Shown here piece after piece: positions 47,475 through 51,590 of a stretch of DNA of 64,000 bases (the first letter of the stretch is position 1; each line of letters starts with the position of its first letter). The stretch spans positions 372,001-436,000 of the IMG/VR virus record IMGVR_UViG_3300005613_000001. The stretch is one strand, 5' to 3'. The position numbers and the translations under genes are program-made. The notes below the pieces were generated by a model, which was not told where the DNA came from, searched no databases, and saw nothing but the letters and a program-made list of their open reading frames with translations.

Positions 47475-48137
47475 ATGGGTGATCCGAGAAGAGGTAGAAA
47501 ATATTTAACGCCAGCAGGCCAGCTTGTTGTCTTTCTGTATGCCAAGCGATTGGCCGCTGCCTGGGATGACCCCTATCAAGAAGAAGATGTAGTAGTTAAG
47601 CATATCGGCAAAGGGTACTCAGGCGAGCTTGAAGATATTCCTTTTCATTACTTGAAGCCTGTCCGTAAACGACGCCGACCCCAAGCACTTCCTTCTGATC
47701 GCGGGGGTTATTCATGTCCGCATTGCAGGACTTCATTTCCTAATTATCGCGGCCCCGAAGTAGAATGCCCTGGCTGTGGAAGTATTGGGGAATCTTTTAA
47801 AGAGTGGCTACTTAATGAAATGGCAATGATTTCATTACCTCGCCCCTTGGCTACTGAAGATGGGGTTATTGATGCAATTGATTTAAGATTAGAAGATTAC
47901 CCTAAGAATACAGAAAAAGAGAAAACAAAGTTATCATTGCTTATGTTTAGAAGTCCATTTTGCGGCAAATTTCCCGGCTCTAGTAAATATTTCGTATTTG
48001 ATGGTGAGGATTACACAATTGATATGCAACCACATCCTGATTACATACAATTGCCGGAAGATTGGTGGGAATTCGCCGTAGCTTATAGAAAAAACAAGGT
48101 TGTCAAGCGGCCAAGGAAGGCCCGCATTTATGATTGA
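47475..48137 (+). CDS. hypothetical protein with Zn ribbon and internal CTS-like motif
   Basis: CPHC..CPGC followed by ESFKEWLLNE. Confidence 0.7.
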   Translation: MGDPRRGRKYLTPAGQLVVFLYAKRLAAAWDDPYQEEDVVVKHIGKGYSGELEDIPFHYLKPVRKRRRPQALPSDRGGYSCPHCRTSFPNYRGPEVECPGCGSIGESFKEWLLNEMAMISLPRPLATEDGVIDAIDLRLEDYPKNTEKEKTKLSLLMFRSPFCGKFPGSSKYFVFDGEDYTIDMQPHPDYIQLPEDWWEFAVAYRKNKVVKRPRKARIYD

Positions 48138-48439
48138 GGTCCGAATATATGAGCCGGATCATCAAGTGCGTCAGGCGATTTGCCTTGAAACTGCATGAAT
48201 TTTATTTCTAATTGTCTAATTCTCTCCTTCACGGCATTTAACATCTTGTGAAGGTTTGAAGAGTCGGTCATTGCTCTTTGTACTCCTACTTCAAGCCTTC
48301 TAATAGCATAAGGCTCCTCAGGAGTTGATTTAACAGGAGGCGCAGTAGGAACTTTCATCCCAGCAGCCGGTGTTTGGCTTGGTAATTCTTCTGTGGGGCT
48401 GTCCCCTACGTTCTCTATAAAATCTCTAAAAGCACCCAT
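48128..48439 (-). CDS. putative internal head protein (MGAFRDFIE)
   Basis: CTS-like start. Confidence 0.7.
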   Translation of the reverse strand: MGAFRDFIENVGDSPTEELPSQTPAAGMKVPTAPPVKSTPEEPYAIRRLEVGVQRAMTDSSNLHKMLNAVKERIRQLEIKFMQFQGKSPDALDDPAHIFGPQS

Positions 48440-48458
48440 TTAGCCACACCACCAGTGC

Positions 48459-48654
48459 CAATGTGTTAGCTGTATGTTCCCATACAGATCGGACTATCTC
48501 ATCCCCGTAGGGCCGGGCGCTCTTGCTGGTAATTAAGAGGACTCTACCTCCCCAGTAGTCTCTGCACCTTCTTCCGGTGTACCGAAAGCTTGGCTCAGGG
48601 TTGCCCGTTCTGGGTTTTCCCTGAATTCACCCGATTTAACGTGGCCTATTTTAT
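48459..48654 (-). ncRNA. group I intron ribozyme (compact, with P7.1; no ORF), intergenic
   Basis: P3 TCGGGTG/CGCCCGG; P4 TCAGGG/CCCTGA; P5 CCC/GGG; P6a CTTTCGG/CCGGAAG; R GTGCAGAGACTA; P7.1; P8 CCC-TACG-GGG; S ATGAGATAGTCC; P9 CTGTATG-GGAA-CATACAG; P9.0 GAT/ATT before omega-G at 48459. Confidence 0.9.
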
Positions 48655-49704
48655 CTATTCACTTACTTGCTCTTCTGTAACCCAACATTTCATTAACCGT
48701 AGATAAGAGTCAGAATCTTCCATTACATCGGTATGGCGTGATCGTTTAAATAACAAAATTAACGTGTGCCACTCGCCCGCTGCCGGTAAATTCGCCCCTA
48801 ATGCTGTGCTTACTTTCTCATACACTCTCAATTCTTCTGCATTCGTCAATTCAAAATCACCAACCGTTTCCAATTCATATCCACCACACTCTGCATAGCT
48901 CCACCAATAGGGGGCTGTGTTTAATAGTGTTCCCGATGGCGAACCATCAAATTCTTCTCTAAACGCCCCACCTTCCGCAGCATTTTCTGCACCAACGTTG
49001 GTCTTTAAAATATAAGTAGGAGCCCCAAGAACATAAGTAGTCCCATTGTGTTGGGCACATTCAAATACACAGAGGCGGTGACAAAAAGAGTGGTGACCAT
49101 CTTCAGTGGGCGGATCAAGATTTGTCATCGCACGAATTAATTGTGGATGGCCCGAAAGTAGTGTCTCACCGTCTTCTGGCCCTGGCGTTATATCCGAACT
49201 TGCCTCATCAAGATCATCATAACTACAAACATCCTCGCCCCAAGTTCCATAATACCAAGATGCAATCAACCATTGAGTCCCATCTGATACAACATGCATC
49301 CCCACTGCTTGATTGGTGGTAGACCATTCTGCCAAACCATCTACAAGGAAACCTTCACTTTTGAGAGTCAAAGCCGCAGTAGAAGTATTGGCTCGTTTTA
49401 TAACATATTCTTCCCCACTACACCCTCTAGGATCAGGCAAGTTAACAGTGGTAGCATCTTCAGATGTTACGACAATTAGATGGTCTTCAAAGGTCACATA
49501 AATAATGGTCACAGAAGACTCAACAACTCTAATTTCAAGCCCGTTTCTAAACTGAACGTGCTTATTGGCGGGACCACCAGTTTTGTTAACAGAGGCGGCT
49601 GGGCTATTCGCCTTGAGAACCTTATGCATGTCATCAAGAGTATAGCCTCTTAATTTACCTTCTGCCGAGCCGGGGCCTGTGCCTGTTGCTGATTGTGCGC
49701 CCAT
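48655..49704 (-). CDS. putative virion fibre protein (MGAQSATGTGPGSAEG)
   Basis: shared N-terminal arm; TVNLP..G..YVIK..VDG..SDGTQW fibre-like module. Confidence 0.7.
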   Translation of the reverse strand: MGAQSATGTGPGSAEGKLRGYTLDDMHKVLKANSPAASVNKTGGPANKHVQFRNGLEIRVVESSVTIIYVTFEDHLIVVTSEDATTVNLPDPRGCSGEEYVIKRANTSTAALTLKSEGFLVDGLAEWSTTNQAVGMHVVSDGTQWLIASWYYGTWGEDVCSYDDLDEASSDITPGPEDGETLLSGHPQLIRAMTNLDPPTEDGHHSFCHRLCVFECAQHNGTTYVLGAPTYILKTNVGAENAAEGGAFREEFDGSPSGTLLNTAPYWWSYAECGGYELETVGDFELTNAEELRVYEKVSTALGANLPAAGEWHTLILLFKRSRHTDVMEDSDSYLRLMKCWVTEEQVSE

Positions 49705-49716
49705 TAAAATATATAT

Positions 49717-50238
49717 CTACTCGGTCAGCTTTCTATAAAGGCTAATCGGACTTTCTTTCCAATGTGCTGAGTTAATCCGCCCCGTTTGACTTATCATATC
49801 GCCTACATAGTGACTACAATGCATTCCAATTACTTCACGATTGACTAGCCAACCCCTTAAAGAATATGGTCTTCCAATATGTGAATTAGCATATTTCTTC
49901 ATTTTGGCAAGCTCTTCCCCGGTATAGGGCACATCAGGCTGCACATAATACACTTCTAGGCTTCTACGAAATCTTTGACGCCTAACTGTTTTTTCTAAAT
50001 ATGTGCTTAATAGTGTTCTTTGCACGCCACCTGGGGCTGCTTCGTAAGCCCAATGTCTGCCATCTTCATACAAAACAATAGCCACATGACACATATGACT
50101 TCCTGTGTGTCTTGCAATGGGGCGAGAGAAGAATCCATTCTTAAAGAATATGACTGTTCCCTCTGCCATTTCCGCTGAAAAAACAGGTGTACAGAGTAGT
50201 ACAAAAAATAAGAATAGAGATAAAACGATCCTGTTCAT
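49717..50238 (-). CDS. exported permuted papain-like NlpC/P60 (YiiX/YebB-like) hydrolase
   Basis: HVAIV before IGRPY..HCS..V; signal peptide. Confidence 0.85.
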   Translation of the reverse strand: MNRIVLSLFLFFVLLCTPVFSAEMAEGTVIFFKNGFFSRPIARHTGSHMCHVAIVLYEDGRHWAYEAAPGGVQRTLLSTYLEKTVRRQRFRRSLEVYYVQPDVPYTGEELAKMKKYANSHIGRPYSLRGWLVNREVIGMHCSHYVGDMISQTGRINSAHWKESPISLYRKLTE

Positions 50239-50273
50239 AGCACTCCTTTACAAAATCCTCTACTAATATTTAT

Positions 50274-51590
50274 TCAGTTACAAACAATAATACAAGAATA
50301 CCAAACACCATTTGATCCTTTTGCCATATCTGCGCCAAAGTAACGATGTTGTTTTGAAGCAACAGACCAATGACCTGGCGATTCTTTCCAACATTTAAAC
50401 ATTTCCCACCCTAAATCAAACATTGAATCATTTTCTTGTCGTTTCCATGATTCGGCACAAATCTCTGCTGTCTCTCTCCCTAAACCAGCATTCATAATCT
50501 CTTGAGAGCGTTTGTTGAAATTTTGATGTCCTTGTGTCCGAACTCTTGCTTGATATTCTGCGTGTTTTGTAGCTAATTCCATCAATAGTGGATGGGGTTC
50601 TGATTTACAAACATTAGCCCCCGGAAATTGCAGCCCCGCCTCTATAAGACCTTCTGATGTGTTGTGCAAGTCGGGCTTTGCATTATTTTCAAATGCTATT
50701 GGGGCCTCTTTCATAAAATATAACGCCGCCTCATAAGTTCTATTAAACTCATCTTTGATTTCATTATCTGAGGGGGGTCTTTGATGTGTGCCGAATTCAA
50801 TAATAATTCCAAATGCACCTTGTCTATCTGCCCAATTGGCATCTAGAGTTGGCCCAGCAGATCCACCTCTAGTTCTATAGCCTGACAAGTCGCCCATTTT
50901 CCCGCATATTCTTTTGTAGGCGTCTTTATTTGAAGGATATATAAATACCCTTCCATAAGAGTGCCCTGAGGCAAAGGCATCAAATTCCTGTTTTTTAAAG
51001 AAATCTCTTAAATTTTGAATAGGCGTTACTGACTTTTTGTTGTCATAAAAATTCCTATTGGGATCAACCCCGTCTACGCTTCTACTATTGGGGTAACTAT
51101 CGGGGGATATAACTGGAATAAACCACAGTTCTCTTGTATCTACAAGTTCTGTAATTTTTGCATCTTTCCCATAATTATCTAGAATAGTTCCAATCCACCC
51201 CAATACAGTGCAGGTAGAAATAGGCTCATTACCATGAATACAACCCGACATCAAAACTTTGGGTTTGTCACCTGTTTTCATCTCATTGGTAATGCGAATA
51301 TAAACTTGATCCTTATTTTTAGTTGTTTTCCCATAGGTTCCAATCTCAACTAAATCTTCCGCTTCTTTTTCCCACGCTTTTAATTGCTCCACTAATTGTG
51401 GATACTCCATAAAAGATGGGATAACAACCGAAATGTTGGGTTGTTGCGGCTCTTGAGGTTGAGTCAGTTCGGAAACTGCTCCCTCAAATTTCTTAAAGAG
51501 TTCTTCTACTGGTCTTTCTGTTGACGTGGAGTAGAAGAAGAGTGTAGATAGCACAAACAGTGCTATAAATAGAATAACCTTCTTGTCCAT
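50274..51590 (-). CDS. exported M14 zinc carboxypeptidase fused to CAP-like domain
   Basis: IHGNE, DPNRN, HSYG, IEFG; C-terminal H..F..R, EICAES, W..SPGH. Confidence 0.88.
   Translation of the reverse strand: MDKKVILFIALFVLSTLFFYSTSTERPVEELFKKFEGAVSELTQPQEPQQPNISVVIPSFMEYPQLVEQLKAWEKEAEDLVEIGTYGKTTKNKDQVYIRITNEMKTGDKPKVLMSGCIHGNEPISTCTVLGWIGTILDNYGKDAKITELVDTRELWFIPVISPDSYPNSRSVDGVDPNRNFYDNKKSVTPIQNLRDFFKKQEFDAFASGHSYGRVFIYPSNKDAYKRICGKMGDLSGYRTRGGSAGPTLDANWADRQGAFGIIIEFGTHQRPPSDNEIKDEFNRTYEAALYFMKEAPIAFENNAKPDLHNTSEGLIEAGLQFPGANVCKSEPHPLLMELATKHAEYQARVRTQGHQNFNKRSQEIMNAGLGRETAEICAESWKRQENDSMFDLGWEMFKCWKESPGHWSVASKQHRYFGADMAKGSNGVWYSCIIVCN

Follow-up and report, generated by a model that had tools for sequence, protein, structure and literature searches.

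The DNA analysed here (the window) is a 64,000-nt stretch, positions 372,001 to 436,000 of IMG/VR virus record IMGVR_UViG_3300005613_000001, and lies within a 527-kb contig of a huge phage. Two genes of its minus strand, on which all features described below lie, are of concern: an upstream gene of 349 aa (48655..49704, TAG stop at 48657-48655), known from the list of open reading frames (ORFs) and from homologs, and a downstream ORF of 103 aa (48128..48439), whose ATG (48439-48437) comes directly after an in-frame TAA (48442-48440). The gap between them holds a group I ribozyme that an earlier note, made from the letters alone, had described as free-standing and permuted. As that note had claimed, no gene is interrupted, since both flanking ORFs are intact and the C-terminus of the upstream protein matches those of its homologs. 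By fold the element is a member of the group I family, yet it does not qualify as an intron. The comparisons presented here make it probable that it is a free-standing group I ribozyme with a permuted P1, which would process the polycistronic mRNA of which it is a part. Direct support comes from the fold, the absence of an interrupted gene, the permuted geometry of guide and target, their covariation, a conserved wobble pair, and the preserved context of the omega-G.

A scan of the whole window at Rfam gathering thresholds matched a single family, RF00028. The match is full length (48715..48470, minus strand; model positions 1-253) and strong, at 76.8 bits (E = 9e-18) compared with a gathering score of 50; the relatives discussed below score 36-86 bits. 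The first ~60 alignment positions, P1 and P2 of the model, are forced onto the coding tail of the upstream ORF, and this portion of the alignment shows no conservation in relatives. The catalytic core, as defined by the Rfam alignment, the fold and conservation, covers 48470..48634 and is composed of P3 (48634-48628 with 48519-48513), P4 (48624-48619 with 48600-48595), P5 (48614-48612 with 48606-48604), P6/P6a (48594-48566), P7 (48560-48556 with 48496-48492), a P7.1/7.2 insert (48555-48526), P8 with a UACG loop (48512-48503), and P9 with a GGAA loop of the GNRA type (48487-48470). The elements P3 to P9 of the core proposed in the earlier note were recovered in this way one by one. No riboswitch aptamer fused to the ribozyme was matched in the same scan of the window, and there was no match to the GIR1 lariat-capping family, RF00028 being the best and sole Rfam family over the full model length.

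The segments that bound the core carry the permutation. On its 5' side the guide GGCCACG (48640..48646), the internal guide sequence that forms the 3' strand of P1, is separated from P3 by a spacer, UUAAA (48635..48639), and there is no P2. On the 3' side lies a tail, CUAACACAUUG (48459..48469), homologous to the ...AUAACA(N)nG↓ ends of conventional introns (arrows mark predicted or known cuts) and itself ending in a putative omega-G. This is likely to be G48459, as the earlier note had it, because the 3' end so defined is common to the conventional introns of the same subclass; G48458 may be an alternative position. The tail is followed by a 17-nt linker, GCACUGGUGGUGUGGCU (48442..48458), which holds a Shine-Dalgarno-like (SD-like) GGUGGU and the last seven nucleotides of which, UGUGGCU (48448-48442), are the target strand of P1. 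Guide and target pair over 7 bp that include the wobble U48442.G48646, just as previously described, and unconstrained minimum free energy and centroid folds both recover this helix. The substrate strand of P1 is accordingly found 3' of the core, not 5', and on one strand the omega-G at 48459 precedes the predicted 5' splice site at 48442↓48441. No partner for the guide was found upstream of it, again in agreement with the note. From the position of the conserved U.G wobble and the group I mechanism, cleavage and G addition are predicted at U48442↓A48441 (48441..48442). The target is followed by AA and then by the ATG at 48439, which confirms the placement of the predicted U↓AAAUG cut 2 nt before a start codon; the further reading of its product as a near-leaderless message carries caveats, namely a 17-codon ORF and a terminator that are found at the corresponding place in relatives.

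The only close relative of the window locus is one variant, recovered from three samples (L001, L005, and L006), that shares the gene tail, the ribozyme, and the 17-mer. It pairs the guide GGCCGCA with the target UGCGGCU (in L001, UUGGCCGCA with UGCGGCUAA), and the helix differs from that of the window by an A-U to G-C exchange and a G.U to A-U change; the 17-nt linker shows one change, which is matched by compensation in the guide. Between the two variants of this clade the core is 93% identical, the linker 94%, and the gene 75%.

More distant loci retain the same layout. In 8 clades, genes homologous to the upstream gene at ~30% identity are followed, past their own stop codons, by the same ribozyme (the ribozyme-bearing distant homologs being L008, L009, L011, L052/L113/L127, L143, L144, and L145), and nearly all distant homologs for which downstream DNA is available have a group I ribozyme at the 3' end. 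The spacer from stop codon to guide ranges from 0 to ~180 nt across loci, the upper value being that of L011, whose ribozyme starts ~180 nt past the stop. The upstream gene family is the constant partner of the ribozyme and the downstream genes differ, no homology being detectable among the downstream genes of different clades. A core-pattern scan of viral contigs yielded 118 loci of the same subclass. In 31 of them a guide of the GGCC or GCCC type abuts P3 without a P2, often behind AT-rich non-coding DNA, and the conventional members of the set have an upstream target, a P2, and the ...AUAACA(N)nG↓ 3' end, as exemplified by the split DNA polymerase gene of phage PaoP5. A separate scan of genome contigs for a guide plus P3 pattern gave 11 matches with an estimated ~9 expected by chance, most of them without the other parts of the ribozyme, and was discarded.

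Across these clades the guide and the downstream target change together, as would be hoped from the comparison of related phages proposed in the earlier note. The distance from the wobble G to P3 is 12 nt in the window, in its close relative, and in the cultured Flavobacterium phage described below, and 7 nt in most other clades. Each guide therefore predicts a 4-base target word, the complement of the three bases 3' of the wobble G followed by U. The resulting pairs, besides GGCCACG with UGUGGCU in the window, include UUGGCCA with UGGCUAA (L052), GCCCAU with GUGGGU (L008), GGCCCC with GGGGUC (L064), GGCCAGU with ACUGGUC (L056), GGCCC with GGGCU (L144 and L145), and GGUCCU with AGGAUC (the Flavobacterium phage), and the guide-target helix of L054 reaches 10 bp. 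The type of target thus tracks the type of guide, GGCU accompanying GGCC, GGGU accompanying GCCC, UGGU accompanying GCCA, GGGCU accompanying GGCCC, and AGGAUC accompanying GGUCCU. The predicted word often occurs as a single copy in 420 nt, with 2-27 nt between it and the ATG of the next long ORF, and in 13 of 16 loci the 120 nt upstream of the guide do not contain it. The relatives are in this sense free-standing, with a downstream partner that changes with the guide, and are not copies of a conventional intron within a gene. Together with the strong covariance-model match, this means that neither of the two computational refutations named in the earlier note came about. The covariation table was anchored by script, as a MAFFT alignment of nine members misregistered guide and target.

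When measured by energy, the helix stands out weakly against the 45 nt before the ORF (Fisher p = 1e-3 with all representatives, 0.06 with one locus per family), and a positional word test was substituted for significance based on energy. This test required the predicted word to fall in the 30 nt that precede the start of the longest downstream ORF and took the full set of 256 four-mers as its null; 11 of 13 families passed (P = 1.2e-9), or 10 of 12 when the window was excluded (P = 1e-8). These values overstate the independence of families sharing ancestry, although the evidence points consistently one way. Two positions that played no part in the choice of target are also frequently paired, position +1 in 12 of 15 families (as A-U, C-G, or G-C) and position -4 in 10 of 15 (with four pair types).

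The three-nucleotide complement is followed by U in 12 of 13 families, whereas C follows it in 2 families, A in 3, and G in 1, which is background. A conserved U.G pair is the signature of the 5' splice site of group I introns, and this bears upon the possibility that fold and helix are real and no chemistry takes place, the element being an idle, domesticated structural RNA that serves as a 3' stabilizer or a translational regulator; in the latter case the helix would sequester the segment between the SD-like GGUGGU and the AUG. The helix does clamp the whole domain shut, it is flanked by the SD-like element and the start codon, and the gene before the ribozyme is always of one family although the genes after it vary, all of which would fit such an RNA. 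A merely structural helix is nevertheless disfavoured, because U is kept opposite the guide G, and C remains at background, where a C-G pair would be expected. Furthermore, the core matches the full group I model and is better conserved than coding DNA, and the omega-G context is kept as in relatives that splice. We consider an idle fold unlikely, without dismissing it.

The self-processing ribozyme has to be set against several observations that weigh against it, in addition to the shared ancestry of the families. In the window taken by itself the guide-target pairing is at chance level, with 10 copies of TGTGGCT where 6.9 are expected and a duplex energy that does not differ significantly from that of shuffled sequences (p 0.07-0.3); for its significance the helix therefore depends on the relatives. 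Tested against the 240 nt downstream, the helix energy is again not significant. The window's own clade comprises just two independent sequences, and its A-U to G-C exchange is a single event that could have passed through G.U. In the nearest relative (L001/L006) a deletion of ~270 nt has shrunk the 103-aa ORF to 17 codons, and in the Flavobacterium phage an intrinsic terminator, not a start codon, comes after AGGAU↓C, the predicted target. The four loci of the L071 group (L071, L076, L110, and L120) have a unique guide-predicted site, GGGU↓AAAAGUCC, that lies 15-68 nt from the next ATG and at least 67 nt from a long ORF. One homolog, L009, has A at the position of the wobble G and no clear target, with ACGGCA↓AUG at the expected target site. 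A 17-nt circle of which 7 nt are held in P1 may be strained, and DNA contigs from four runs at the locus revealed sequence variants and no joints. L009 may be a decaying or differently wired copy; its element (562-797) is GC-rich and scores 43.9 bits, below the Rfam gathering threshold.

The chance-level pairing within the window and the degenerate appearance of L009 would both fit a decaying remnant of a conventional intron that has acquired a downstream complement by accident. For such a remnant there is a slim chance, given a core that is 93% conserved next to a gene conserved at 75% and a layout that persists, with guide-specific targets, in homologs of ~30% identity and in many other phages. 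The same word count bears on the other guide-complementary sites to which the earlier note had drawn attention, UGUGGU at 48888-48883 and UGUGGCU at 50086-50080, and on trans-splicing to an exon elsewhere. Both sites are present in the window, and UGUGGU is kept in the close relative, where it could still pair by way of G.U; being unchanged, it is uninformative. Use of either site would cost intact genes some of their conserved coding sequence, the heptamer is at its chance frequency, and the partner that covaries with the guide across clades is the downstream site beside the following gene. These alternatives found no support, and we give them the smallest chance of all the readings considered.

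A conventional intron near the 3' end of the 349-aa gene was first suspected because the 17-mer plus AA reads in frame to the TAA. Its 5' splice site would be ...UGUUGGGU↓U (48680/48679) and its 3' site the omega-G at 48459, leaving a 3' exon of 19 nt and a protein ending in ...KCWV-HWWCG. Apart from the fitting reading frame, the codons for HWWCG and the stop show one change between the variants, which is synonymous, compared with six non-synonymous nucleotide changes in TEEQVSE, and the 5' exon resembles that of the T4 td intron (a td-like ...UGGGU↓U site). The upstream pairing needed would, however, require a 2-nt bulge and three G.U pairs, and the upstream target word is missing. The gene tail also behaves as coding sequence in homologs. 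A homolog 76% identical to the 349-aa protein has the same C-terminus, and DSDSYLRL at the tail of the upstream ORF is kept despite 4 synonymous changes; as the substitutions in the tail are synonymous and distant homologs end at the same point, the ORF is read as coding up to its own stop. Homologs of ~30% identity keep T followed by an acidic residue or Cys after V/I (KCWVTDQ, AAHITCP), and the AAHITCP stretch must be translated, because L008 and L009 differ across it at third codon positions only. In other clades the stretch from the last conserved codon to P3 is too short to hold a P1 hairpin, the distance between stop codon and guide reaches 180 nt, and the "exon 2" peptides are unrelated except for a Gly codon and then a stop codon. 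An intron with a tiny 3' exon was rejected on account of the coding tail in homologs, the lack of room for P1, and the unrelated exon 2 peptides, and its probability is, to our mind, a shade below that of a decaying remnant.

For the permuted, self-processing ribozyme, catalysis, products, and physiological role in the window are extrapolated from the mechanism of group I introns. The ribozyme would be co-transcribed with the upstream gene and would fold on the polycistronic RNA; no promoter-like site was found between the 349-aa gene and the ribozyme. The guide, at the 5' edge of the ribozyme just after the stop codon of the conserved gene, would then dock the target at 48448-48442, and an external guanosine or guanosine triphosphate (GTP) would most likely attack after U48442. 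The products of this first step would be an upstream RNA that ends in ...GGCU with a free 3'OH and a downstream RNA that begins with G-AAAUG. In a possible second step the 3'OH of U48442 would attack after the omega-G at 48459 and release the 17-nt linker as a minicircle, with a predicted back-splice junction that joins U48442 to G48458, and the upstream mRNA would then end in the folded ribozyme. The net effect would be a self-catalysed punctuation of the operon transcript that fixes where the upstream message ends and where the downstream one begins, and hence the translation or stability of the latter. A role for the upstream message is suggested because the upstream gene family is the constant partner, and because the target has hardly any or no translatable sequence after it in both the nearest relative and the Flavobacterium phage. 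An effect on the downstream cistron is suggested because in most other families 2-30 nt would separate the cut from a start codon. With the cut in the window the SD-like GGUGGU would be lost, so that cleavage could either silence the downstream ORF or create a near-leaderless message.

Extended to the relatives, the proposal becomes one of a widespread phage class of P1-permuted group I ribozymes that are no introns, cut polycistronic or 5'-UTR RNA with GTP a few nucleotides ahead of a start codon, and release RNA circles, a generalization that we regard as a serious possibility while stopping short of calling it probable. A full-text literature search, the coverage of which is incomplete, found no account of a phage class of group I ribozymes that are permuted, free-standing, or intergenic. 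In architecture, the ribozyme nearest to that of the window belongs to the cultured Flavobacterium phage vB_FspM_immuto_2-6A (L130, MW353175.1, ~145.03-145.26 kb), whose host is Flavobacterium sp. LMO8, and scores 76.9 bits with Rfam. It is located two genes past the tail fibre gene, in a place where the annotation has a 44-aa "hypothetical protein". A second subfamily of the permuted type was seen in twelve viral contigs (L028, L047, L055, L060, L074, L086, L088, L089, L098, L103, L106, and L116). Here UUGGCC(N)UAU serves as the guide and directly adjoins P3, often with TATAAT-like AT-rich DNA in front, and P9 is followed by a hairpin, GAUAACA, and a conserved structured segment of ~76-81 nt that ends in (A/G)UCGGCU↓(A/G)A; the gene of a Lys-rich protein of ~125 aa (MPRKK..., MAAKKK...) begins 4-27 nt further on. 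In L098 a U to C change in the guide is matched by A to G in the target. If back-spliced, the segment would be a structured circle of ~80 nt.

Known systems share parts of this arrangement. The ND5-717 group I intron of corallimorpharian mitochondria has a permuted precursor and back-splices by way of a circular exon-containing RNA (Chi et al., 2019, BMC Mol Biol 20:16, PMC6545197), and its authors call it the first reported natural case (PMC6545197). As predicted in the window, the 3' splice site comes before the 5' splice site on one transcript. ND5-717, however, interrupts ND5, is broken in the peripheral segment at P8, where most of the mitochondrial genome is located, and restores an mRNA, whereas the window ribozyme interrupts no gene, has its break in the loop of P1, resides in a phage, and belongs to a class that recurs; its "exon" is merely 17 nt (10 to ~130 nt in relatives). 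Permuted intron-exon (PIE) constructs, built from Anabaena or T4 td introns, consist of a 3' splice site, an exon, and a 5' splice site, and yield a circular exon together with two linear intron pieces. The order of splice sites and the predicted products are identical to those of the window ribozyme. PIE constructs are engineered, and the usual place of their split is a peripheral loop, for instance that of P6; the arrangement in the window is natural, is split in L1, and has the remainder of the mRNA in place of the downstream "half-intron".

Ribozymes that process messages without disrupting a gene are also known. In Clostridioides difficile a group I ribozyme coupled to a c-di-GMP-II riboswitch precedes an ORF and controls its expression by guanosine-dependent processing, a combination reported solely from this organism (Lee et al., 2010, and Chen et al., 2011, as summarized in PMC9481103). 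This bacterial ribozyme, which lies in a 5' untranslated region, resembles the window element in that it leaves coding sequence uninterrupted and stands ahead of an ORF. When its ligand is absent, the C. difficile ribozyme reportedly lets GTP attack an alternative site near the 3' splice site and start codon, which removes the ribosome binding site. The C. difficile element combines a fused aptamer with a 5' splice site in the normal, upstream position, whereas for the window ribozyme the downstream site is the sole, conserved partner. GIR1, a descendant of group I introns, does not splice and processes the 5' end of a downstream mRNA (PMC8637638); its core is remodelled and forms a 3-nt 2',5' lariat by branching, in contrast to the ordinary RF00028 core, U.G-containing P1, and putative omega-G seen here. 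Natural circularly permuted group II introns are free-standing, bacterial, and yield RNA circles (Roth et al., 2021, PMC8637638), but differ in ribozyme class and chemistry. Conventional phage introns of the same subclass, such as those in the DNA polymerase gene of Pseudomonas phage PaoP5 and in tape-measure-like genes (L023, L025, and L070), have the same core motifs, the same ...AUAACA(N)nG↓ end, and the same short P1, with GGGU paired to GCCC or GGCU to GGCC. Unlike the window ribozyme, they interrupt genes, have their P1 target upstream of the guide, and carry a P2 between guide and P3.

Group I ribozymes of bacteria and phages are treated as introns, that is, as selfish insertions that need to splice out. 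If the interpretation favoured here is true, phages would have recruited the group I fold for gene expression, with possible uses in the punctuation of operon transcripts, in messages that start with an added G and are near-leaderless, and in the production of small RNA circles. The class to which the window element belongs would then be a natural counterpart of the engineered permuted intron-exon systems that are now used to make circular RNA, bacteria or phages would for the first time have a natural group I system that back-splices, and natural group I back-splicing would extend from one mitochondrial oddity to a recurrent viral strategy. For annotation it would mean that covariance-model matches of this type are likely being recorded as introns without a host gene. 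The availability of a cultured host and phage pair with a close architectural relative makes the question directly testable.

The neighbouring genes offer some further detail. A profile search divides the 349-aa protein into two domains, of which the C-terminal one (~residues 205-349) characterizes the family of genes whose 3' ends bear this ribozyme; this domain may be related to tail fibres, which is a weak lead. The N-terminal domain (~residues 50-155) recurs, often repeated, at the C-terminus of hundreds of large proteins, with weak Atlas leads to the C-terminal domains of phage tail fibres or depolymerases, and a precomputed Pfam label, ApbA, on one homolog (P0002) looks spurious. The 103-aa downstream ORF has no family match and is not conserved as a gene. 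Between the window and L001/L006 its first five codons only are conserved, and the ~270-nt deletion in the latter places the end of a convergent plus-strand gene beside the ribozyme. The TAA in frame with this ORF overlaps the start as TAAATG (48442-48439), and a GGNUAA(A)AUG arrangement recurs in several clades because the P1 target ends in U and is followed by A-rich bases. A metagenome variant on a sediment contig (window 48697-48966, minus strand) has a 90-codon in-frame deletion in the 349-aa gene that joins ...GAENASEGG straight to LMKCWVT...; its stop is shifted two codons downstream (TAG to TAT, with a new TAG), and guide and target are unchanged. Upstream of the 349-aa gene two more genes occupy 49717-51590 on the minus strand, one for a secreted-looking protein of 173 aa with a weak PHROG match and the other for a 438-aa zinc carboxypeptidase (Peptidase_M14, E = 2e-24).

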